IMG/VR virus record: IMGVR_UViG_3300017917_003143
Location: 248,001-312,000 of that record
DNA length: 64,000 nucleotides
Strand: one strand, 5' to 3'
The notes under the pieces are model-generated. The model worked only from the letters and a program-made list of their open reading frames with translations. It ran no database searches and had not been told where the DNA came from. The position numbers were made by a program, and so were the translations under genes. The number at the start of each line of letters is the position of its first letter. Positions within the stretch are counted from its first letter, which is position 1. Shown here piece by piece: positions 25,852 through 63,441 of the stretch.

Positions 25852-26868
25852 ATGGCCAACTTATTCAAGAAGGCTATCGTTTTCACTGACATCCACTTTG
25901 GACTGAAATCGAATAGCCTATTACACAATCAGGATTGCGAGAAGTTTGTAGATTGGATCATTGCCACAGCCAAGGAGCAAGGTTGCGAAACCGGTATGTT
26001 CCTAGGCGATTGGCATCATCATCGTGCGGCAATCAATCTACAAACACTAAACTTTAGTTTGCAGGCTCTGGAAAAACTATCCCGAGCCTTTTCGCAGTTT
26101 TTCTTCATACCCGGAAATCACGATCTCTACTACAGAGACAAGCGTGACATCCACGGTGCAGCCTGGGCCAAGCACTTGCCCAACATCCACATCTGCAATG
26201 ACTGGTTTGAAGAAGGTGATGTCATCATCGCTCCTTGGTTAGTAGGCGATGATCACAAGCGTATCCAAAAAATGTCCAGCAAGTACATGTTTGGACACTT
26301 TGAACTGCCACACTTCAAGATGAATGCCATGGTAGAAATGCCAGACCACGGTGAGATACAGGCCGCACACTTTGGACACTATGACAAGGTGTTCTCTGGG
26401 CATTTCCACCTGCGGCAACACAAAAACAACATCAACTACATCGGCAATGCGTTTCCGCACAACTTTGCCGACGCAGGAGATGACAAGCGCGGCTGTATGA
26501 TTCTTGAGTGGGGAGCAGAGCCCGAGTATCATGCCTGGCCCGAACAACCTCTTTACAATGTTTTCGATCTTTCTACTTTGATCGATCATGGAGATCAGCT
26601 GTTGAAACCCAACATGCATGTGCGTGTACAGCTGGACATTGAGATATCATACGAAGAAGCCACATTCATCAAAGATACATTTATCGCCAAACACAGTCTC
26701 AGAGAAATGGCGCTGATTCCAAACAAGAGATCTGCCTTGGAAGAAGACATGGCGCCAGGCGAAATACGTTTTGAATCTGTAGATCAGATTGTTACTGATC
26801 AGATCACCAAGATTGAATCCGAGTTTTACGATCCCAAATTGTTGTTACAAATCTATCAGGCTCTATGA
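25852..26868 (+). CDS. gp47: Recombination endonuclease subunit (Mre11/SbcD-like)
   Basis: Metallophosphoesterase motifs FTDIHFG, LGDWHH, PGNHD, GHFE and SGHFH; adjacent to gp46. Confidence 0.93.
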   Translation: MANLFKKAIVFTDIHFGLKSNSLLHNQDCEKFVDWIIATAKEQGCETGMFLGDWHHHRAAINLQTLNFSLQALEKLSRAFSQFFFIPGNHDLYYRDKRDIHGAAWAKHLPNIHICNDWFEEGDVIIAPWLVGDDHKRIQKMSSKYMFGHFELPHFKMNAMVEMPDHGEIQAAHFGHYDKVFSGHFHLRQHKNNINYIGNAFPHNFADAGDDKRGCMILEWGAEPEYHAWPEQPLYNVFDLSTLIDHGDQLLKPNMHVRVQLDIEISYEEATFIKDTFIAKHSLREMALIPNKRSALEEDMAPGEIRFESVDQIVTDQITKIESEFYDPKLLLQIYQAL

Positions 26869-28628
26869 TACAAATAAAAGACTTGACCGTTAAAAACTTT
26901 ATGAGTGTGGGCAATGCCACACAAGCCATCAACTTTGATCGTAGAGACCTCACGCTGGTCCTGGGCGAAAACCTTGACCTGGGTGGTGACGGTAGTAGGA
27001 ATGGCACGGGTAAAACTACTATTATCAATGCCTTGAGCTATGCCCTGTATGGGCAGGCCCTGACCAACATCCGTCGAGACAATCTCATCAACAAGACCAA
27101 TGGCAAAGCTATGCTGGTTTCTTTGGATTTCAACATCAACGGCAAGGACTACAGGATCGAGCGAGGGCGTAAACCCAATGTGCTAAAGTTCTATGTCAAC
27201 AATGAAGAACAAGCCGCAGATGACAACAGCCAGGGCGACAGTCGTGAAACACAGGATGCCATCGAGTCTGCGCTGGGTATGAGTCACGACATGTTCAAAC
27301 ATGTGCTGGCCTTGAACACATACACAGAACCTTTCTTGAGTTTGAAAGCTAATGATCAACGAGCCATAATTGAACAGCTCTTAGGCATCACTTTGCTTTC
27401 AGAACGTGCTGAACGCATCAAGGAACTCAACAGAGAAACCAAAGATGCCATCACGCAAGAAGAGATGCGTATCCGAGCTGTACAAGAAGCCAACAAACGC
27501 ATAGAGGAGCAGATTGAAAATCTCAAGAGGCGCCAAACACTATGGATTTCCAAGCAAACGGAAGACGTTGAAAAACTTGAAAAAGCCATTGAAGATCTCA
27601 AGGCGATTGATATTGAAGCGGAAATACAGGCGCACCGCGATCATGCCACGTGGGACCAAAAAAGGAAAGACTTCAACGACTTACAGAGTGCGCTTTCCCG
27701 TGCTAAACTCGAGCGTGATCGCGAAGATAAAACCATTAAAAAGGTTGCATCAGAGATTACGTCACTTGAAAACCATACCTGCCATACGTGCGGTCAAGCG
27801 TTCCACGACCATAAGCACCAACAAGTGTTGGAAAAAAAGCAGAAGGAGTTGGCAGATGCTCGAGAGGCAAGCCAGCAACATAGCACCACAGTATCAGACT
27901 TGGAGACTGCCATCGCCTCCCTGGGCGAGATAGGTAAGCCGCCCAAAATGTTCTATGATCAAGAAAGCGATGCCATAGAACATCGTGCCAACTTGGCTGC
28001 TTTGGAAAAGCAGTTGGAAAGCAAAAAAATTGAAACCGATCCCTATGGTGAGCAGATCGAAGAAATGTCTGGACAAGCCTTGCAAACAGTGAGTTATGAC
28101 ACACTCAACGAACTCACACGTCTGCAAGAGCATCAGGACTTTTTGCTCAAGCTACTCACCAACAAAGATTCGTTTATTCGTAAGAAAATCATCGAACAGA
28201 ATCTTAGCTATCTGAACTCAAGACTCACACACTATCTTGACAGGATCGGATTGCCTCATCAGGTTATCTTCCAAAACGATCTTACTGTGGAGATCACTGA
28301 ACTGGGTCGAGATCTTGATTTTGATAATCTGAGCAGAGGTGAACGCAATCGTTTGATACTAAGTATGTCGTGGGCTTTTAGAGATGTCTGGGAGAGCCTA
28401 TATCATCCAATCAACGTGCTGTTCATTGACGAGCTTGTGGATTCTGGTATGGATACACAGGGCGTTGAAAACTCCTTGGCATTGCTTAAGAAAATGAGTC
28501 GTGAACGACACAAGAGCATTTGGCTGGTAAGTCATAGAGACGAGCTGGCTGGACGAGTAGAAAACATACTCAAAGTTGTGAAAGAAAACGGGTTTACCAG
28601 TTATAACACAGATGTAGAAATTTCATGA
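26865..28628 (+). CDS. gp46: Recombination ATPase subunit (Rad50/SbcC-like)
   Basis: Walker A GSRNGTGKTT, coiled coil with a CHTC zinc hook, signature LSRGE and Walker B LFIDE. Confidence 0.93.
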   Translation: MIQIKDLTVKNFMSVGNATQAINFDRRDLTLVLGENLDLGGDGSRNGTGKTTIINALSYALYGQALTNIRRDNLINKTNGKAMLVSLDFNINGKDYRIERGRKPNVLKFYVNNEEQAADDNSQGDSRETQDAIESALGMSHDMFKHVLALNTYTEPFLSLKANDQRAIIEQLLGITLLSERAERIKELNRETKDAITQEEMRIRAVQEANKRIEEQIENLKRRQTLWISKQTEDVEKLEKAIEDLKAIDIEAEIQAHRDHATWDQKRKDFNDLQSALSRAKLERDREDKTIKKVASEITSLENHTCHTCGQAFHDHKHQQVLEKKQKELADAREASQQHSTTVSDLETAIASLGEIGKPPKMFYDQESDAIEHRANLAALEKQLESKKIETDPYGEQIEEMSGQALQTVSYDTLNELTRLQEHQDFLLKLLTNKDSFIRKKIIEQNLSYLNSRLTHYLDRIGLPHQVIFQNDLTVEITELGRDLDFDNLSRGERNRLILSMSWAFRDVWESLYHPINVLFIDELVDSGMDTQGVENSLALLKKMSRERHKSIWLVSHRDELAGRVENILKVVKENGFTSYNTDVEIS

Positions 28629-28658: not shown

Positions 28659-29093
28659 ATGTCATGGCTTTTCGAATCTCAAGAAATTACGGAACTACCC
28701 GAAGATTGCGTTGGTTTTGTTTATTTGATCACTAATAAACTGACCGGCAGGAAATATATTGGCAAAAAACTTGCAAAATTTAAGCGAACAACATACAAAG
28801 TAGTCAAACTCAAAAACGGCAACAAGAAACGCAAAAAAATTCGTGGCAAAATAGATTCAGATTGGCAAACATATTATGGCAGTTCTCCGGAGTTATCTCG
28901 AGATGTTGAACTGTTAGGCTCACAAAACTTCTCACGCGAAATCTTATACTACTGTAGGTCCAAGGCTGAATGTAGCTATATCGAAGCTCGCGAACAATTT
29001 TCCCGACGTGTATTAGAATCAGATGATTACTACAACGGGCACATACAAGTGCGTGTACATGGTAGTCATATCAAAGGCAAGATCGCTCAGTAA
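28659..29093 (+). CDS. Stand-alone GIY-YIG nuclease-domain protein (Seg-like family) with a basic insertion
   Basis: GFVYLITNKLTGRKYIG motif, a later Glu (YIEARE) and Asn (YYNG); 144 aa with no separate C-terminal DNA-binding domain. Confidence 0.8.
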   Translation: MSWLFESQEITELPEDCVGFVYLITNKLTGRKYIGKKLAKFKRTTYKVVKLKNGNKKRKKIRGKIDSDWQTYYGSSPELSRDVELLGSQNFSREILYYCRSKAECSYIEAREQFSRRVLESDDYYNGHIQVRVHGSHIKGKIAQ

Positions 29094-29460: not shown

Positions 29461-29531
29461 TTCGCTTCGCTCATCTCTTAATAATACATTCATGAGCGAC
29501 AGCGAAATGAATAGAACTTCGTAGAAGTTCT
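29461..29531. other. Cluster of inverted repeats with GNA/GNNA DNA mini-hairpin motifs; possible origin or ssDNA signal
   Basis: TTCGCTTCGCTCAT (29461-74) pairs with ATGAGCGACAGCGAA (29492-506). GCGAAGC on the minus strand (29464-70), GCGACAGC on the plus strand (29496-503), AGAACTTC-GTA-GAAGTTCT (29513-31). Confidence 0.4.
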
Positions 29532-29540
29532 CAAAGTGTG

Positions 29541-29876
29541 TTATAGATTAGTATCTGGCCAATCACGGAACAGTGCGTGTTGTATATCGCCAGCAACGAA
29601 CTGATTGAATGACTTGTGTTTCTGTTCGAGTTCTCCTTCGAGTGGAGCAACACGACGGAATGCCTGATCCATTTGGCCCATGTTCCGGAACTCCATGAGT
29701 ATCATCCATTCTGGCATGTCAGCTATACTACGGAAGCCCATCTTGCAACGAGTAATCCTGTAGCTTTCCATCTTGCCCTCAGAAACTAAGTGATCAAAGA
29801 AGCTTTTCATGCCCGTGACCCAGTCTATGTCGCTGATGTCACCTTCTTTGTTGGCCCATATAGTGTAAATGTCCAT
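29541..29876 (-). CDS. Small alpha/beta-barrel-like protein, DUF6614-like
   Basis: 111 aa; the pattern FFDHLVSEGKMESYRITRCKMGF...ILMEFRNMGQMDQAF resembles DUF6614 (from recall); TAATG overlap with the upstream gene. Confidence 0.5.
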   Translation of the reverse strand: MDIYTIWANKEGDISDIDWVTGMKSFFDHLVSEGKMESYRITRCKMGFRSIADMPEWMILMEFRNMGQMDQAFRRVAPLEGELEQKHKSFNQFVAGDIQHALFRDWPDTNL

Positions 29877-30316
29877 TATGTCATCGGTCCTAAAATTTCA
29901 AATCCATCTATCTCTTTCTTGTAGAGATGTGCTTGCTCGAGATAGAGATAGTCAAACCCCCGGGCTTTGTAGATAGCACACTCTGTTTTCATTGTTTCAA
30001 TGCCCAGTCTTGCTCGAGGATCGTGATAGGTCCAAGCAAATTGGGCACATTCGGCATTGCGATCATCATAGCGTTTGATCAAGCTGAATGCTACCATGCG
30101 TCCTTGGTCAAAATATCCAATCACATCAGTCATTGGATCAGTGTAGCGACTACGGAACATAGGCATCACACTTGCAAAGTGTTTGTAGATGCAATAAGTC
30201 CTGTAGATCTCGTCCAGCTCGACCATCTGCTCTTCAGTGGGTATGAGGTATCCCCATTCCACTGTTGGCTCGTAATTGGTTTTTGCCAAGTTAATCCTTG
30301 CAAATTGATAGCTCAC
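29876..30316 (-). CDS. ATE_C/Bpt-like aminoacyl-tRNA-protein transferase domain protein (GNAT/FemABX fold)
   Basis: IYRTYCIYKH, GRMVAFS, RLG, GFDYLYL and YK..E.L align by eye to the bacterial Bpt C-domain consensus LYxxYxxxRH...GKLVAV...SLG...GLPYLYLG...YK. Confidence 0.6.
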   Translation of the reverse strand: MSYQFARINLAKTNYEPTVEWGYLIPTEEQMVELDEIYRTYCIYKHFASVMPMFRSRYTDPMTDVIGYFDQGRMVAFSLIKRYDDRNAECAQFAWTYHDPRARLGIETMKTECAIYKARGFDYLYLEQAHLYKKEIDGFEILGPMT

Positions 30317-30819
30317 TGGCGCGGATCCTTTCTGTGATTAAACAACACCTTTAGATAGTTTTCGGGCCAGGAGTCATAGAATCCTTGGCGTGCCATGAGC
30401 CGGGCTTTTTGATCCAAGTCACTGACACTTTGTACCAATGCTATAGCGTATGTTCCTTGATTCATAGGAACACCGTTGACTATTTCAGGATCTTGCGGGT
30501 GGTCTTCAAGCACTATGAGATCTTTGGCTAGCAAAAATTCTGTGTTGGCATACTCTAATGCTTGATGGAAATCTTCATAATTCCAGTGATCGGCATCGTA
30601 CACCAGCATCACCACTTTTTTGTCACCCAGGCCACTCAGCGCCAGTTGCATAAGATCCAGTATTGGATTGATGCCTATCTGTATCCTGTACTCGTTGTTG
30701 ATCCTGGCTTGCCGTGCATATGGGCAAGGTGGCCAGCCGCCCAGAGCAGGGTGTGGAACTTCAACAAAGCCCACGATCCATGATTCTATATCTTGGCGGA
30801 CACGATCAATATCTAACAT
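30313..30819 (-). CDS. DUF1415-like protein
   Basis: IESWIVGFVE...PCPYARQA and LEDHP resemble the DUF1415 W...CPFA and FHP motifs; TAATG-coupled to the gp51-like gene. Confidence 0.55.
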   Translation of the reverse strand: MLDIDRVRQDIESWIVGFVEVPHPALGGWPPCPYARQARINNEYRIQIGINPILDLMQLALSGLGDKKVVMLVYDADHWNYEDFHQALEYANTEFLLAKDLIVLEDHPQDPEIVNGVPMNQGTYAIALVQSVSDLDQKARLMARQGFYDSWPENYLKVLFNHRKDPRQ

Positions 30820-31031
30820 TAGTAAAAAGGTAATCCAGATTTTTTGGTTGTTTCAAGATTGTCCTTGATGATAGCACCCACGATGTTGCGTTCTGCAACG
30901 CTGAGATTCATGCCTTCTTCGTATGTTACGCCTCCTCGCATGTACCAACACATTTTAAGAACATCTTCTCTGATACTGGCTACTTCTTTGTCTTGCTGTT
31001 CAATGAGTTTGGCAATGCCTTCAGGACTCAT
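30819..31031 (-). CDS. Small baseplate hub assembly protein (gp51-like), 70 aa
   Basis: MSPEGIAK...LKMCWYMRGGVTYEEGMNLSVAERNIV; ATG 2 nt after the gp26-like stop, so the start is moved from the track's 31115. Confidence 0.55.
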   Translation of the reverse strand: MSPEGIAKLIEQQDKEVASIREDVLKMCWYMRGGVTYEEGMNLSVAERNIVGAIIKDNLETTKKSGLPFY

Positions 31032-31882: not shown

Positions 31883-31934
31883 GTTTTTCCTTACCATAAA
31901 TATTTGGATACAACCTTACTTATCGGCGTAGATT

Positions 31935-34331
31935 ATGGCAGATTTAGAAAATTCCAGCGAACTGTTGCGACAATCCTTAGATGAATTGCGCAAAACCGGC
32001 ATGCTCACTGCCAGCACGTTGGACAAGCTAAATGCAGCCGCTAAAAAAAGCACCAAAGATGTCAAGGATCTTGGAGAAACTACCAAAGAAACTGCCGGTG
32101 ACGTTGACGACTTTGGAAAGACACTGACCAAAGTCACTCGTGCGCTGATTGATTCTACAGGTGCTATAAGAGAAAACAGAGAAGATTTCCGCAGTCTCAA
32201 CCCGGCTATCAGAGCATCAGGTATAGCAGTAGGTGCGGCTGGTCGCAAGTTTGGAGATGCGATCAGTGGTGTTGGTGATGCCATCTCTGGCCTTAGTTTA
32301 TTTTTGGGCCCCAAAGGCAAACTGATTGGTATCCTGGGCGGTGGCTTATTGTCCGGCCTAGGCAAAGCAGTAGGAGCCAGTTCGGATGCGGCCGCACAAT
32401 TGGCCGTGCAGTTTGGAGAATTTGCCACAGGTGAATTACAAAATGTAGTCAATGCATATCGTCAAGTGGGAGCAGTGGGCGCGATATCTGCCGGTGGAAT
32501 GACACAGCTCTATGATCAAGCCATTGCTGCCGGACTGAGCATTGGACAGTTCAGCAAAATCATAGCTGAAAACAGCGAGACACTGGCCAAAGCAACTGGT
32601 AGCACTGCCGAAGGTGCCAAGGTGTTGGCACAAATCGCCAATGTCGGTGACGCCACACAAAAACAATTTTTAGCTCTAGGCATATCAGTTGAACAGACTA
32701 GAGAGTTCCAAGCCAAATTCCTAGAACAAAATCGAGTCACTGGTCGTATCGCCATCGGCGATACCAAAGCACTGACAGAAGCCAGCAAAGCATACATTTT
32801 CCAACTGGATGAGTTGGCCCGAATCACAGGATTGAGTAGAGAACAAGCTCAAAAATTATACGACGAACAAAATAGAAACATAAGATTCCGTGCCAGTGTG
32901 CGCATGGCCGAACGAGAATTTGGACCAGCCGCGGCACAAGCCATGAGAGATTCTGTGGCTGTGATCAGTACTGTGAACAAGCAGTTTGGTCAAGGTTTCG
33001 CTGACCTTATGGGTCCTGGTGGCGCCTCAACAGAAGCCGCTAAGAACCTGCAGATAGCTACAGGTAATGCTGCCAAAGGCATCGCTGACATGGTGCGCAC
33101 CGGACAGATCACTGCGGATCAAGGTGCGGCTATGATCCGTCAAGCCATTAGAAACAAGATGGAAGGCCTGGGCGGAGACACATATTTGGGTCTGGTAGGC
33201 GGTGTTGAAGGGCCAATGAAGGATCTGCTGTTGGGCATGGATGACATAGCCATAGCCAACAATCTCAACGTTGAAGAGATGAAAAAGGCTCGTCAAGGTA
33301 GCATAGATGCCAGAAAAGCTGAAGATAAAAATACTCAACAGGTCATTGATGCACAGTTAGCACTGCAAAAAATGGCAGTGGAACTTGACAAGATAGTCAG
33401 AGATAAAATATTACCTCATGCAGCCACGGCTGTTAAAACATTCACAGAAACATTGTTGTCGTCGGTCGACTACATCAATGAAAAATTAGGTATTAAACCT
33501 GCTGGAGGTGGTGGTGCAGGCGGAGGTGGTGGAGGTGGCGGCCCAGCAGGTCGCGGAACCGGAACAACACAAGCACCTGCCACAGGTATAGGCGGTGCTG
33601 GTGCACCAACACCTGAAGCCGCCGGAACGTTGGGCGCAATTAGAACACTGATTGGAAAAGCAGAAAGCGGAGGCAACTATAACATATTGGTTGGCGGTAA
33701 AAAGGCCGATTTAACAAATATGACGTTGGCAGAAGTTTACGACTTGCAGAAAAAAATGATGCAACGTGGCAGTGGATTTGAAAGCACTGCGGTGGGCAAG
33801 TATCAAATGCTGTATGGCACACTAAGGAGTACAGCAAACAAACTTGGACTCGATCCAGCCACTACCAAGTTTGACCAAGCTACCCAAGATAGATTAGCAG
33901 ACGAACTGATCGTCAGCAATGCCGGTTATAACAAATATTCATCAGGTGCTATCAGCAAAGAACGATTCCTTTACAATCTTTCTGCTATCTGGGCAGGCTT
34001 ACCAAAAGATGCCAGCGGTGTCAGCTATCACAAAGGAGTGGGTTCTAACAAAGCCACTGTGGGCTGGGAAGAAGCCATGGGCAGTTTTGCCTATGGTGGC
34101 ATCAGCTCAGGACCAAAGTCGGGTTACATGAGCATGTTGCACGGCACCGAAGCAGTGATTCCACTGCCAGGCGGTCGCAGTATTCCTGTGGAAATGAACG
34201 GGGTTACAGACAAGATTGGCGAACAAGTCACTATGATGAGTGCCCAGTTAGATCGATTAGATGAAATGGTTAGTTTGATGAAAACCAACAACGACGTCAA
34301 CACAAAGATACTTCGCGCCCAGCAAAGTTAG
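31935..34331 (+). CDS. Tape-measure-like protein with a C-terminal lysozyme (lambda-lysozyme/GH104-like) domain
   Basis: Ala/Gly-rich helical N-terminal about 520 aa, a poly-Gly linker, then KAESGGNYN...STAVGKYQMLYGTL...FDQATQDRLA. Confidence 0.7.
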   Translation: MADLENSSELLRQSLDELRKTGMLTASTLDKLNAAAKKSTKDVKDLGETTKETAGDVDDFGKTLTKVTRALIDSTGAIRENREDFRSLNPAIRASGIAVGAAGRKFGDAISGVGDAISGLSLFLGPKGKLIGILGGGLLSGLGKAVGASSDAAAQLAVQFGEFATGELQNVVNAYRQVGAVGAISAGGMTQLYDQAIAAGLSIGQFSKIIAENSETLAKATGSTAEGAKVLAQIANVGDATQKQFLALGISVEQTREFQAKFLEQNRVTGRIAIGDTKALTEASKAYIFQLDELARITGLSREQAQKLYDEQNRNIRFRASVRMAEREFGPAAAQAMRDSVAVISTVNKQFGQGFADLMGPGGASTEAAKNLQIATGNAAKGIADMVRTGQITADQGAAMIRQAIRNKMEGLGGDTYLGLVGGVEGPMKDLLLGMDDIAIANNLNVEEMKKARQGSIDARKAEDKNTQQVIDAQLALQKMAVELDKIVRDKILPHAATAVKTFTETLLSSVDYINEKLGIKPAGGGGAGGGGGGGGPAGRGTGTTQAPATGIGGAGAPTPEAAGTLGAIRTLIGKAESGGNYNILVGGKKADLTNMTLAEVYDLQKKMMQRGSGFESTAVGKYQMLYGTLRSTANKLGLDPATTKFDQATQDRLADELIVSNAGYNKYSSGAISKERFLYNLSAIWAGLPKDASGVSYHKGVGSNKATVGWEEAMGSFAYGGISSGPKSGYMSMLHGTEAVIPLPGGRSIPVEMNGVTDKIGEQVTMMSAQLDRLDEMVSLMKTNNDVNTKILRAQQS

Positions 34332-56903: not shown

Positions 56904-58121
56904 ATGTCAACCCAGATACAATACCGCAGAGGATCCAGCTCACAAACAGCCAGCTTTACAGGTGCGTTGGGCGAAATTACCGTTGATACCACTAATAAAG
57001 TAGTGGTAGTTCATGACGGAGCCACACTGGGTGGATTTAGCGGAGTTGGTACTACTGCTACTCAAACGCTGACAAACAAAACACTACAAAGTGCTGTTTT
57101 AACAGGCACACTCACAGCCAACGGTGGTACAGGATCTAGTGGACAATTTTTATCTAGTACAGGCACAGGCGTAGCCTGGGCTACAGTTGACGCTACCAGC
57201 ATAGCCAACGGTACTTCTGCAATAACTGTCATTGCGTCAGGCGGTAATATTCGTGCTAACGTAGGCGGCGCAACCAATACTACATTTACTGCTACTGAAG
57301 CCAACGTCAGTGCCAACCTTACTTGTACCGCCCAGACTGGTCTTGGAACAGCACCTACCACAGCCGCTGTGACCATTGGTGGTAATGAAACAGCTACCAG
57401 TTGGACTACCAATGGTATTGGTTTAAGAATCAATGCGGCAACTTACACGGATTCAGGCACACCGGCTGCCGGCACAGCCGCATCAAATCATATACATGCT
57501 ATTGCTCAAGGTACTTTGGCTGCTACCAACGGCACTGTTACTACTACCAACGCCGCAACATTATACATCGCTGGTGCACCAGTAGCCGGTAGTAATATGA
57601 CTATTACTAATCCGTATGCCATGCAGATTGCCGCAGGTAACTTTATAACAGCTGGTAACATTTTAGCGGCATCTAACAATACCAGCAACATCGGTACATC
57701 ATCTACCAAGTTTGGTAACATTTTTGGTGTCACAGTCAATGCCACTTACGCTGACTTGGCCGAACATTACACCACTGATGCTGAATATGAACCAGGTACT
57801 GTATTGATATTTGGTGGAGACAAAGAAGTTACACAAAGCACAACGAGCCACGATCCAGCAGTGGCAGGAGTAGTTTCAACCAATCCAGCTTATGTCATGA
57901 ACATTGATCTGCAAGGTGGTGTAGCAGTAGCATTGACCGGACGAGTTCCATGCCGTGTGGTAGGAAAGATAAAGAAAGGTGATTTGTTGGTTACCAGCGC
58001 CATTCCTGGTACTGCAACCAAGATGGATACCTTTGTTCCAGGTAGTGTCATTGGCAAAGCATTGGAAAACTATGACAGTGAAACGCCAGGTAAAATTGAA
58101 GTGGTGGTGGGAAGATTATGA
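56904..58121 (+). CDS. Fibre tip / receptor-binding-like protein with an Mtd-N-like start and a YADLAE C-terminal domain
   Basis: MSTQIQYRRG...GALGEITVDTTNKVVVVHDG; C-terminal YADLAEHY...GRVP...KGD. Confidence 0.75.
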   Translation: MSTQIQYRRGSSSQTASFTGALGEITVDTTNKVVVVHDGATLGGFSGVGTTATQTLTNKTLQSAVLTGTLTANGGTGSSGQFLSSTGTGVAWATVDATSIANGTSAITVIASGGNIRANVGGATNTTFTATEANVSANLTCTAQTGLGTAPTTAAVTIGGNETATSWTTNGIGLRINAATYTDSGTPAAGTAASNHIHAIAQGTLAATNGTVTTTNAATLYIAGAPVAGSNMTITNPYAMQIAAGNFITAGNILAASNNTSNIGTSSTKFGNIFGVTVNATYADLAEHYTTDAEYEPGTVLIFGGDKEVTQSTTSHDPAVAGVVSTNPAYVMNIDLQGGVAVALTGRVPCRVVGKIKKGDLLVTSAIPGTATKMDTFVPGSVIGKALENYDSETPGKIEVVVGRL

Positions 58122-61984: not shown

Positions 61985-62245
61985 ATGAACATGGATCAGA
62001 GCTTGGCTCACAGCATTGATGAACTAAGAAAACAGATAAGCCAAATCAATGCCAAACAGCGGGCAGATCTGCAGAAAATGTTAAACCACTGTCAACATCT
62101 TTGGGCAGAAATGAGCAAAGAGCATGTGCGTTGTCGCAGGGTTTGGCGTCTGACTCCAAAGTATTTGGATTTGGAACAAGAGCTAAAAGACACCCTTAAC
62201 ACAGCGCAACAGCACGTGATTTTGGCTACACTCATGGGTGGTTGA
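61985..62245 (+). CDS. Hypothetical early protein (86 aa, coiled-coil-like)
   Basis: Clean ORF 6 nt after a perfect sigma70-type -10 element. Confidence 0.6.
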   Translation: MNMDQSLAHSIDELRKQISQINAKQRADLQKMLNHCQHLWAEMSKEHVRCRRVWRLTPKYLDLEQELKDTLNTAQQHVILATLMGG

Positions 62246-62270
62246 CCAGAAATCCAAAAAGTAATATAAT
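62242..62270 (+). promoter_or_regulatory. Sigma70-type promoter
   Basis: TTGACC-17 nt-TATAAT upstream of the 381-aa gene. Confidence 0.8.
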
Positions 62271-62295
62271 TACACATTAGATCATAGGAGCCTGT

Positions 62296-63441
62296 ATGAA
62301 AACTGCTACCAAATTTGTCGCTGTCAAACCACTGAACCCTCGCAGTCCAGACACCAAATACACTGGACTTGAACCACAGTGGAAAACCCAACCCACTGAA
62401 AATCGTGTCAGTGCGCTGAGCGGTGCTTTTTCTTGGTACAATTATCACTATGGCAAAAAAGAAGCCAAGGACATGATCGTCCAGTGGCTCGAACATCATG
62501 GTCGCAGTAAAGATGCCAAAAAGTTCCGAGGCGTGCCGGACAGCCAAGTCCGGCTGACTCCTGCTTGGTTAGCTCGCATGAGCTTGGTAGGGCTGGATCT
62601 GTCAGAACACGAAATGATCCATCTCGACGACCAGATCAACAAGATGCTGGCTGTCAAACAAGAAGCCAAAGTTGAAAAAACCACAGAAGAAGTCGCTGTG
62701 GCAAAAGTCACCATCCAGGACCGACTGCGTGAGAAAGTCCAGGAATGCGCCGGAGAGCTCGAAGGCTTGTTTGATGATTTTGTCGCCGATGGCGCTAAGA
62801 TGTCGGCGAGCTGGAAACCCATCGCTACTATCCGTGGCATGAACGTTGCTCCGCAAATGGTTGGCAGTATCGCTGAAGTATGGCGTGCCAAGCTGGCTGA
62901 GTTTGAAGAAGTGCTGGAAGGAAAAGATGCACAGTTGGTCGAAGGCTATTCAAACTTCAGTAAAATCCAGATTAAAAACTTGGTAAAATTTGCTGAACAA
63001 GTGATCAACGATTGCGGTGCTTATGTCCAGATCAAGAAAGTGGAACGCAAGCCACGTGCCAAGAAGGCTGTGAGCCCAGAAAAACAATCAAGCAAATTCA
63101 AGTTCCTCAAGGAATTTCCTGAGCTTAAACTGGTCAGCGAAACACCGGCAAAACTCGTGGGTGCCAGCGAAGCATGGTTGTATGATACCAAGAAACGCAA
63201 GCTGATCCACGTCGTGGCAGATCAACACTTGGGTACATTCAGCGTCAAAGGCTCGAGCATCGTGGGCTTTGACACAGGCGGTAGCAATCAAAAAACCCTG
63301 CGCAAGCCCGCAGAACAGCTCAAAGGCTTGCTGTCCGGTGGAAAACCGGCGGCCCGCAAGTATTTCAAGGATATCAAATCCACAGAAGTCAAGTTCAATG
63401 GGCGTGGCAATGAGAACTTGATCATCCTCAAAGCCTACTAA
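62296..63441 (+). CDS. Hypothetical early protein (381 aa)
   Basis: GGAG Shine-Dalgarno, own sigma70-type promoter, K-rich C-terminus; function not recognised. Confidence 0.8.
   Translation: MKTATKFVAVKPLNPRSPDTKYTGLEPQWKTQPTENRVSALSGAFSWYNYHYGKKEAKDMIVQWLEHHGRSKDAKKFRGVPDSQVRLTPAWLARMSLVGLDLSEHEMIHLDDQINKMLAVKQEAKVEKTTEEVAVAKVTIQDRLREKVQECAGELEGLFDDFVADGAKMSASWKPIATIRGMNVAPQMVGSIAEVWRAKLAEFEEVLEGKDAQLVEGYSNFSKIQIKNLVKFAEQVINDCGAYVQIKKVERKPRAKKAVSPEKQSSKFKFLKEFPELKLVSETPAKLVGASEAWLYDTKKRKLIHVVADQHLGTFSVKGSSIVGFDTGGSNQKTLRKPAEQLKGLLSGGKPAARKYFKDIKSTEVKFNGRGNENLIILKAY

Follow-up and report, generated by a model that had tools for sequence, protein, structure and literature searches.

The question raised by this locus is what a phage does with a small relative of the ATE/Bpt aminoacyl-tRNA transferases. 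The locus lies in a window of 64,000 nucleotides (nt), bases 248001-312000 of the 343,632-bp IMG/VR virus record IMGVR_UViG_3300017917_003143, a jumbo myovirus of probable pond origin, and consists of three short genes, here called p168, p146 and p111 after the lengths of their products, at the end of a run that begins with a baseplate-hub gene. ATE/Bpt-type enzymes are the N-degron writers of eukaryotes and bacteria, and a first-pass annotation of the DNA had proposed that the middle protein, p146, may tag host or virion proteins for degradation or modification late in infection. We compared the three proteins, and the gene neighbourhoods of their relatives, with sequence and structure databases. 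The results identified p146 as a minimal ATE/Bpt-type core, p168 as a probable relative of small thiolate-heme oxygenases and p111 as a DUF6614 protein. They suggest, at a probability that we put near 45%, that the trio is a self-contained accessory enzyme module for arginine/guanidino-centred modification or biosynthesis, with either a small molecule or a specific macromolecular amine as its target.

Relatives of p146 were collected by an exhaustive search of 1.84 billion representatives, which yielded 108 sequences, including long forms of 183-268 amino acids (aa). A word search returned 2,723 clusters at 90% identity, all of about 146 aa and all unnamed. The results showed that 19 of 27 short family members individually matched Pfam ATE_C (best E 7.3e-8), with Acetyltransf_6 matched by 2 and Acetyltransf_1 by 1 of the same 27, and several of the long relatives scored above the Pfam ATE_C cut-off. 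When a profile of 45 family sequences was compared with PDB, ATE1 structures were the sole significant matches (E 2.1e-7), the next match being RimI at E 1.3. A profile built from short forms only still placed ATE1 first (E 0.012), and its top five matches were all ATE1. No ATE_N domain was detected by Pfam in p146 or in any long relative, which agrees with the first-pass annotation, where the middle protein had been described as ATE_C-like without the ATE_N part. At the level of sequence, we consider it solid that p146 belongs to the ATE/Bpt (ATE_C) GNAT family, as a minimal member without ATE_N. All database relatives found here are labelled hypothetical or uncharacterised, including the single BFVD relative ('uncharacterised'). 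Among deposited phage genomes, no match was obtained for the region by megablast or for p146, p111 and a long-form relative by tblastn, and neither p146 nor p111 matched NCBIfam or PHROGs, the p146 family being absent from PHROGs v4. A Pfam ATE_C search of the phage's own genome was likewise empty, because p146 is too divergent.

The functional residues of ATE1 were located in p146 by a hidden Markov model (HMM) alignment, in which klAte1 W260, S273, E277 and Y303-K304 corresponded to p146 W95, T108, E112 and Y132-K133. E112 was kept in 41 of 45 family members, Y132 and K133 together in 40 of 45 and W95 in 43 of 45, and T108 was also conserved family-wide. The p146 start coincided with the end of the N-terminal extension of the long forms (about 50-110 residues), and their C-terminal segment was absent from p146. 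Against PDB, single long-form sequences gave no usable ATE1 alignment, and the mapping of the ATE1 Y173/H178 region is thus uncertain. CoA-using GNATs carry the pyrophosphate-binding motif Q/R-x-x-G-x-G/A between beta4 and alpha3; the beta4-alpha3 loop of p146 reads P-R-A-R-L-G-I-E-T, with G105 as the sole invariant Gly, and the motif is absent. Over its full 146 aa, p146 could be superposed on tandem GNATs at their second lobe only; among these were the aminoacyl-tRNA users L-PGS, FemX, MprF, Sbb17 and ATE1. Its fold groups no less with aminoacyl-tRNA-dependent GNATs than with acetyl-CoA GNATs, in keeping with the first-pass annotation. Mutagenesis of klAte1 has shown that E277, the proposed binder of the Arg moiety, is essential for activity, while K304 is a catalytic residue resembling FemX Lys305 and W260 alters Km (PMC9351520). 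In the same enzyme, R80, Y25 and Y87 of ATE_N form the pocket that recognises N-terminal Asp/Glu (PMC9351520). Judged from the alignment, the parts missing from p146 are exactly those that define N-degron substrate recognition.

The protein encoded upstream, p168, belongs to a family of 2,033 clusters at 90% identity. Weak matches to Pfam DUF6875 were found in 22 of 23 family members (best E 3.4e-4), and none of the 23 matched DUF1415 (PF07209) at E values up to 10. In the ESM Atlas, p168 adjoins clusters named DUF1415/DUF6875 (scores 0.93-0.95, TM 0.82), and the 17-18% of members of those clusters that carry PF07209 provide the sole DUF1415 link. The earlier description of this gene as DUF1415-like thus holds at the superfamily level and fails as a Pfam match. 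The AlphaFold2 model of p168 (predicted local distance difference test 94.9) consisted of a four-stranded sheet between helices, six helices in all. Its invariant residues included C32-P33 in G-W-P-P-C-P-x-A-R, D106-H107-P108, E112, N120, G122, Q130, R36, R39 and R163. DUF6875 proteins have been described as 'cytochrome P422', Cys-ligated b-heme monooxygenases with a sandwich fold and the motif RxGxVCP, which require ferredoxin and ferredoxin reductase (bioRxiv 10.64898/2025.12.11.692455). AglA, the prototype YqcI/YcgG enzyme, has a thiolate-ligated heme in a four-stranded 'sandwich' and N-hydroxylates the guanidine of AMPn-Arg (PMC12866846). On its motifs and predicted fold, the most plausible place for p168 is in this small thiolate-heme oxygenase group, as a divergent viral member that would bind heme.

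In cyanophages, HMO-2011, roseophages and one Bdellovibrionia chromosome, p168 homologues exist without a p146 partner. The closest homologue from a cultured phage lies in S-SCSM2R (57104-57571; locus L090), flanked by a 2OG-Fe(II) oxygenase gene on one side and by baseplate wedge genes on the other. The chromosomal homologue (L104:3917-4543, on a 710 kb contig of a Bdellovibrionia metagenome-assembled genome (MAG); 30% identity, weak DUF6875) is convergent with a Mrp/NUBPL-type Fe-S transfer ATPase gene and near a class II aminoacyl-tRNA synthetase gene, and there is no ATE_C-like gene within 4 kb of it. A relationship of p168 to the upstream neighbours in the distantly related loci L092 and L093 was rejected, since profile comparison revealed no relation.

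The third protein, p111, matched Pfam PF20319 (DUF6614) over residues 1-109 with E 4.9e-22 and 78.6 bits against a cut-off of 25, and the DUF6614-like label of the first-pass annotation is therefore correct. The same family was matched by all 12 of 12 aligned relatives. Their alignment contained 33 invariant columns, including R40, R43, K45, R49, H87, H100 and a C-terminal RD-x-PD, and the invariant set included two His and five Arg/Lys. The family comprises 917 clusters at 90% identity, and no significant relative was found among solved structures. A similarity to coproheme decarboxylase/chlorite dismutase was weak (E 0.07), fell to E 0.77 with a profile and carries little weight. The 44-aa anti-Druantia protein called 'DUF6614' (bioRxiv 10.1101/2024.04.14.589459) is too short to be equated with p111. 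p111 looks like an obligate third component of the cassette.

The conservation of the cassette was assessed in 80 IMG/VR loci from close relatives (p146 identity 71-92%), with more distant loci sampled in addition. Nearly all of the 80 loci keep the gp26-like hub gene, a 70-aa open reading frame (ORF), p168, p146 and p111 together. Among these relatives p146 is 71-92% and p111 79-96% identical, against 38-91% for the neighbouring baseplate proteins. In a second lineage, homologues of p168, p146 and p111 (24-30%, 35-49% and 37-48% identical to the window's proteins, respectively) follow nrdB and are themselves followed by an amidinotransferase-like gene, with MazG and glutaredoxin genes nearby in one member. 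Thus the trio keeps its order even where its neighbourhood is unrelated. Homologues of p168 and p146 also form a pair in L102 and, after ThyX, in L094/95, and a long-form ATE_C gene is convergent with a p168 homologue in L082-85 and L096. For some distant long forms (L086-88, L097/98) no p168 was found nearby. The most distant of these (L097:1-6974 and L098; 268 aa, 28% identity) have SET-domain, epimerase and glycosyltransferase genes around them, in a gene content that resembles a giant virus or other large virus, with no P422-like neighbour. On contigs with a 42%-identical ATE_C-like relative (P0252), an overlapping 165-aa gene, probably p168-like, precedes and a convergent radical-SAM gene follows. 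Two loci carry bacterial names: L099, a 148 kb Haliscomenobacter MAG contig with the gp26-like gene, 70-aa ORF, p168, p146, p111, segE and gp46-like gene, and L100, a 1.7 kb contig of an uncultured proteobacterium MAG in which the gp26-like gene and 70-aa ORF are followed by the beginning of p168. In both cases a phage contig was probably binned into a MAG.

A fourth gene recurs in some relatives. Enzymes of the amidinotransferase family use L-arginine as the amidino donor. A 408-aa co-directional ORF between p168 and p146 in L023 and a 346-aa co-directional ORF between p146 and p111 in L015 are homologous to the 328-aa gene that follows the trio in the nrdB lineage, and the same homology group includes a 375-aa gene after the pair in L102 and a 366-aa gene beside the long form in L082. 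When the 366-aa (L082) and 328-aa (L091) proteins were compared with PDB, they matched L-arginine:glycine amidinotransferase (AGAT), HsvA, SxtG and StrB1 with E values of 1e-8 to 5e-9. Good alignment was confined to the C-terminal part; the catalytic His and C-terminal Cys motifs are kept, and other members share the C-terminal motif. No Pfam model matched these proteins. Four paralogues were found elsewhere in the phage genome, outside the window (G000:C1:55798-56751, 62003-63004, 134810-135871 on the minus strand and 228909-229949). At L129:3456-6177, two amidinotransferase-like ORFs flank the ATE_C-like gene. In one study of T4-like cyanophages, amidinotransferase genes are annotated, and the virion proteome of S-SCSM2R contained an amidinotransferase and a prolyl hydroxylase (PMC12801897).

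We then counted the partners in 183 loci with an ATE_C-like ORF. A P422-like gene was present in 174 of 183, a DUF6614 gene in 152 of 183 and an amidinotransferase-like gene in 41 of 183, counts that are descriptive, given the phylogenetic non-independence of the loci. Their gene orders number at least five. With A2, A1, A4 and AT standing for the P422-like, ATE_C-like, DUF6614 and amidinotransferase-like genes, these include A2-AT-A1-A4, A2-A1-AT-A4, A2-A1-A4-AT, A2-AT-A1-AT-A4 (the L129 arrangement), A4-AT-A2 with A1 convergent, and AT/A1/A2. Genes of a functional module classically stay close together while their order is reshuffled, a pattern here read from loci that are not independent. 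That the three genes co-occur elsewhere, as the first-pass annotation had expected, is borne out by a conserved cassette that also stands in the different genomic context of the nrdB lineage.

On this basis, we propose the following mechanism for the arginine/guanidino-centred module. Most likely, p146 would move an amino acid from a charged tRNA onto an amine acceptor. The amino acid would probably be arginine or another basic residue, because the Arg-binding Glu of ATE1 is conserved, and, since the acceptor domain is missing, N-degron substrates with their N-terminal Asp/Glu would not be the acceptor. p168 would hydroxylate or oxidise either the substrate or the product of this transfer, p111 might act as a helper component, and an amidinotransferase could be supplied in cis or in trans. 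The arginine/guanidine theme is drawn from three of the four families, namely the Arg-donor amidinotransferases, the ATE Glu and the AglA fold. A more specific version, which we regard as tentative and somewhat improbable, is that a widespread group of freshwater jumbo phages encodes a tRNA-dependent non-ribosomal pathway active during infection, in which an amidinotransferase, a single-lobe ATE-type transferase, a P422-type oxygenase and a DUF6614 protein together yield an N-oxygenated arginine/guanidino conjugate. If this is true, the phage could be making the conjugate as an antimetabolite or signal, or a virion protein or DNA could carry it as a new covalent mark.

Several results weigh against the proposed module. 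p146 alone reached only E 0.053 and 14.6 bits against Pfam ATE_C (cut-off 25). The basic helix of ATE1 that enters the acceptor-stem major groove in the tRNA (PMC10115844; PMC9351520) corresponds to a segment that is deleted in the short forms, a K/R-rich insert being kept by some long forms in the alignment, and p146 is acidic (pI 5.4). It is therefore doubtful that p146, acidic and without this helix, binds tRNA on its own. For p168, the match to Pfam DUF6875 (PF21780) is sub-threshold (13.3 bits against a cut-off of 24.5, residues 10-47), and only the Cys-Pro and a nearby Gly agree with the P422 heme motif RxGxVCP. Of the P422 Trp-binding motifs, SBR1 and SBR2 were not found in p168, and M-N-Q-G-x-Y/W is only loosely like MxGxF; because the Trp-binding motifs are absent, the substrate of p168 is probably different from that of P422. 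AglA was the sole clear PDB fold match of p168, at a modest Z of 7.3-7.9. The p168 profile retrieved nothing meaningful from PDB sequences and no sequence similarity to AglA, and a Foldseek comparison with PDB yielded no p168 match at E 0.001 or better. No Fer2 (2Fe-2S) ferredoxin gene was found in the phage genome, other redox partners not having been sought. The window's own cassette has no amidinotransferase-like gene, and the non-independence of the 183 loci also counts on this side.

Four other explanations were weighed against the arginine/guanidino-centred module. In the N-degron explanation of the first-pass annotation, Leu or Arg would be added to N-terminal Asp/Glu late in infection to feed ClpS-ClpAP, with a flanking protein replacing the missing N-domain. 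We consider this highly improbable, even though homology to the ATE_C family, the retention of the catalytic Tyr-Lys and the pocket Glu, and the translational coupling to baseplate-hub genes in this lineage, are in its favour. The pocket for acidic N-termini (klAte1 R80, Y25, Y87) sits in ATE_N, which is absent here (PMC9351520), and neither p168, a relative of thiolate-heme monooxygenases, nor p111, a DUF6614 protein, resembles ATE_N, so that the idea of a substitute N-domain is not upheld either. The cassette also lies beside nrdB in another lineage, and the recurrent amidinotransferase-like partner is left unexplained. Siderophore biosynthesis pairs an N-hydroxylase with an N-acyltransferase, and by the same hydroxamate-type logic p146 could be an acyl-CoA-dependent GNAT that acylates an N-hydroxylated product of p168 without any tRNA. 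This is unlikely, in that the similarity of p146 is specific to ATE_C (19 of 27 members, against 2 for Acetyltransf_6 and 1 for Acetyltransf_1, with RimI at E 1.3), the beta4-alpha3 loop R-L-G-I-E-T is without the Q/R-x-x-G-x-G/A motif, and residues of ATE1-specific function are conserved.

The two remaining explanations concern the target. Phages append amino-acid-derived groups to DNA bases, and the module could modify nucleic acid or nucleotides, for example by making amino-acid or guanidino hypermodified phage DNA bases that counter host restriction. Other lineages place the pair among nrdB, MazG, glutaredoxin and ThyX, and one relative has a convergent radical-SAM neighbour, which would fit; yet position within hyperplastic phage regions says little, the cassette has no conserved DNA-binding, glycosylase or kinase partner, and none of the families has a known nucleic-acid substrate, which leaves this explanation with little probability. 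A post-translational modification of the virion, for example arginylation, amidination or hydroxylation of a tail or baseplate protein that assembly or host recognition would need, appears quite unlikely. Here, as in about 170 related loci, the cassette stands last in the baseplate-hub operon, p168 homologues adjoin baseplate wedge genes in cyanophage S-SCSM2R, and that phage's virion proteome includes an amidinotransferase and a prolyl hydroxylase (PMC12801897). Against this, the nrdB lineage carries the trio at a site far from structural genes, the hub pair of the related jumbo phage Atu_ph07 comes without the cassette, and no modified virion protein is known.

The features of the locus are listed in Table 1. 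The three ORFs of 168, 146 and 111 aa are tightly chained, and their coordinates agree with the first-pass annotation. They close a five-gene co-directional run that starts with the gp26-like gene and the 70-aa ORF. Of the TAATG/ATGA overlap chain that had been described, TAATG was present twice, at the junctions of the 70-aa ORF with p168 and of p146 with p111; the supposed ATGA is GTGA at the p168/p146 junction, where the start codon is GTG, and the gp26-like gene and the 70-aa ORF do not overlap, being separated by a 2-nt gap (TGAccATG). The label 'gp51-like' for the 70-aa ORF could not be verified, as the ORF had no family match in Pfam or PHROG and identity with T4 gp51 is not shown. Homologues of this ORF lie directly 3' of the baseplate-hub gene in phages Atu_ph07 and Phosso, and gp26-like homologues are annotated as baseplate hub in the jumbo phages Atu_ph07, A4 and Paride. 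Judged by the hub protein (30-35% identity), the cultured phages nearest to this one are jumbo myoviruses, namely Atu_ph07, Phosso, Escherichia phage A4 and Pseudomonas phage Paride. Behind its hub gene and small ORF, Atu_ph07 has three unrelated small genes, after which comes a convergent gp46-type exonuclease gene; the window shares this frame, with the cassette and the segE-like GIY-YIG gene in that slot. The same frame without the cassette argues, on gene order, that the cassette is an accessory insertion after the baseplate-hub operon, at the end of this structural operon, and not a baseplate component by ancestry. The segE-like gene, between the gp46-like gene and the cassette, recurs at varying distances in 58 of the 80 related loci.

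Table 1. Features of the cassette and its surroundings in the window (window coordinates).
Feature	Position	Strand	Remarks
gp26-like baseplate hub gene, 287 aa	31034-31897	minus	first of run; Pfam PF12322 T4_baseplate E 7.8e-14; phrog_150 E 4.2e-16
70-aa ORF	30819-31031	minus	between gp26-like gene and p168
p168, 168 aa	30313-30819	minus	DUF6875/DUF1415-superfamily; cytochrome-P422-like putative thiolate-heme monooxygenase
p146, 146 aa, GTG start	29876-30316	minus	minimal GNAT core, ATE/Bpt aminoacyl-tRNA transferase family
p111, 111 aa	29541-29876	minus	DUF6614 protein; last of run
GATAAGTA	31917-31924	minus	one mismatch from ATAAATA; 19-26 nt upstream of gp26-like start
terminator-like hairpin	29513-29531	minus	directly after p111 stop; consensus scan
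segE-like GIY-YIG homing endonuclease gene	28659-29093	plus	Pfam SegE_GIY-YIG E 1.2e-33
gp46-like gene	26865-28628

The late promoter that had been placed at 31917-22 proved to be only a near-match, GATAAGTA, and the T4 late promoter TATAAATA has zero occurrences in the whole window. ATAAATA, which may be the late-promoter core of this phage, occurs exactly at six plus-strand sites (31896, 36129, 41910, 44861, 53172 and 56880) and at two minus-strand sites. The copy at 31896 is on the plus strand and faces the opposite gene, and there is no exact copy upstream of the minus-strand operon. The plus-strand sites fall in the half of the window that begins with a long plus-strand gene (31935-34331). 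The hairpin behind p111 has a weak T-run, and the regional count of such sites was not above the shuffled expectation; as a terminator it is only suggestive. Late expression as a property of the cassette was not supported, given that the trio stands beside nrdB in the second lineage, that other small genes fill the slot in Atu_ph07 and that the named promoter is only a near-match. The phage genome encodes 32 tRNAs, in an island outside the window at G000:C1:188959-208566; they include four tRNA-Arg (ACG, UCU twice and UCG) and one tRNA with a CUA anticodon, labelled 'Pyl' by aragorn and amber-suppressor-like in appearance. A pond-metagenome run contains 98% of sampled words of this DNA and is possibly the source sample; the matching runs were pond and freshwater DNA only, with no RNA run containing this DNA.

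Our literature search found no publication describing a phage ATE/Bpt homologue, and in the report on T4-like cyanophages the amidinotransferase genes were not linked to the partners described here (PMC12801897). The finding therefore combines known kinds of enzyme in a new combination. A single-lobe ATE core without an acceptor domain would test the minimum enzyme needed for aminoacyl transfer. The fixed P422-like partner and the frequent amidinotransferase-like partner point to virus-encoded arginine/guanidine chemistry, which would be a new kind of auxiliary pathway. The cassette also gives testable functional contexts to DUF6614, the viral DUF6875/DUF1415 branch and phrog_25854, all three of them poorly characterised.

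Comparison with known systems places the cassette between several of them. With ATE1 and Bpt, p146 shares homology to the ATE_C GNAT core and the equivalents of klAte1 W260, S273, E277 and Y303-K304; it differs in being viral, acidic and only 146 aa long, in lacking ATE_N (with its acceptor pocket and Zn/Fe-S cysteines), the basic acceptor-stem helix and the C-terminal part, and in being partnered with a heme-enzyme homologue. The other aminoacyl-tRNA-dependent GNAT transferases compared, FemX, L-PGS/MprF and Sba18/Sbb17, have two GNAT lobes per chain, whereas p146 has a single lobe and no sequence-level similarity to them. The facultative fourth gene of the relatives resembles AGAT, HsvA, SxtG and StrB1 in keeping the catalytic His and C-terminal Cys, although it aligns well with the AGAT family only in the C-terminal part and is absent from the window's own cassette. 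Compared with the cytochrome P422 enzymes Mc170 and ThnD, p168 is shorter (168 aa versus 180-300), below the Pfam cut-off and without the Trp-binding motifs SBR1-3, but it has in common with them a small alpha/beta sandwich with a four-stranded sheet and a Cys-Pro near the N-terminus, in the region spanned by the sub-threshold Pfam matches. In argolaphos biosynthesis by Streptomyces monomycini, AglC, ArgRS and tRNA make AMPn-Arg, and AglA then N-hydroxylates the guanidine (PMC12866846). The phage cassette differs from this actinomycete gene cluster in having no phosphonate genes and in the undetectable sequence similarity between p168 and AglA; what the two systems would share is the coupling of an Arg-tRNA-dependent transferase with a small thiolate-heme enzyme, AglC and p146 being parallel by pathway role rather than by family comparison.

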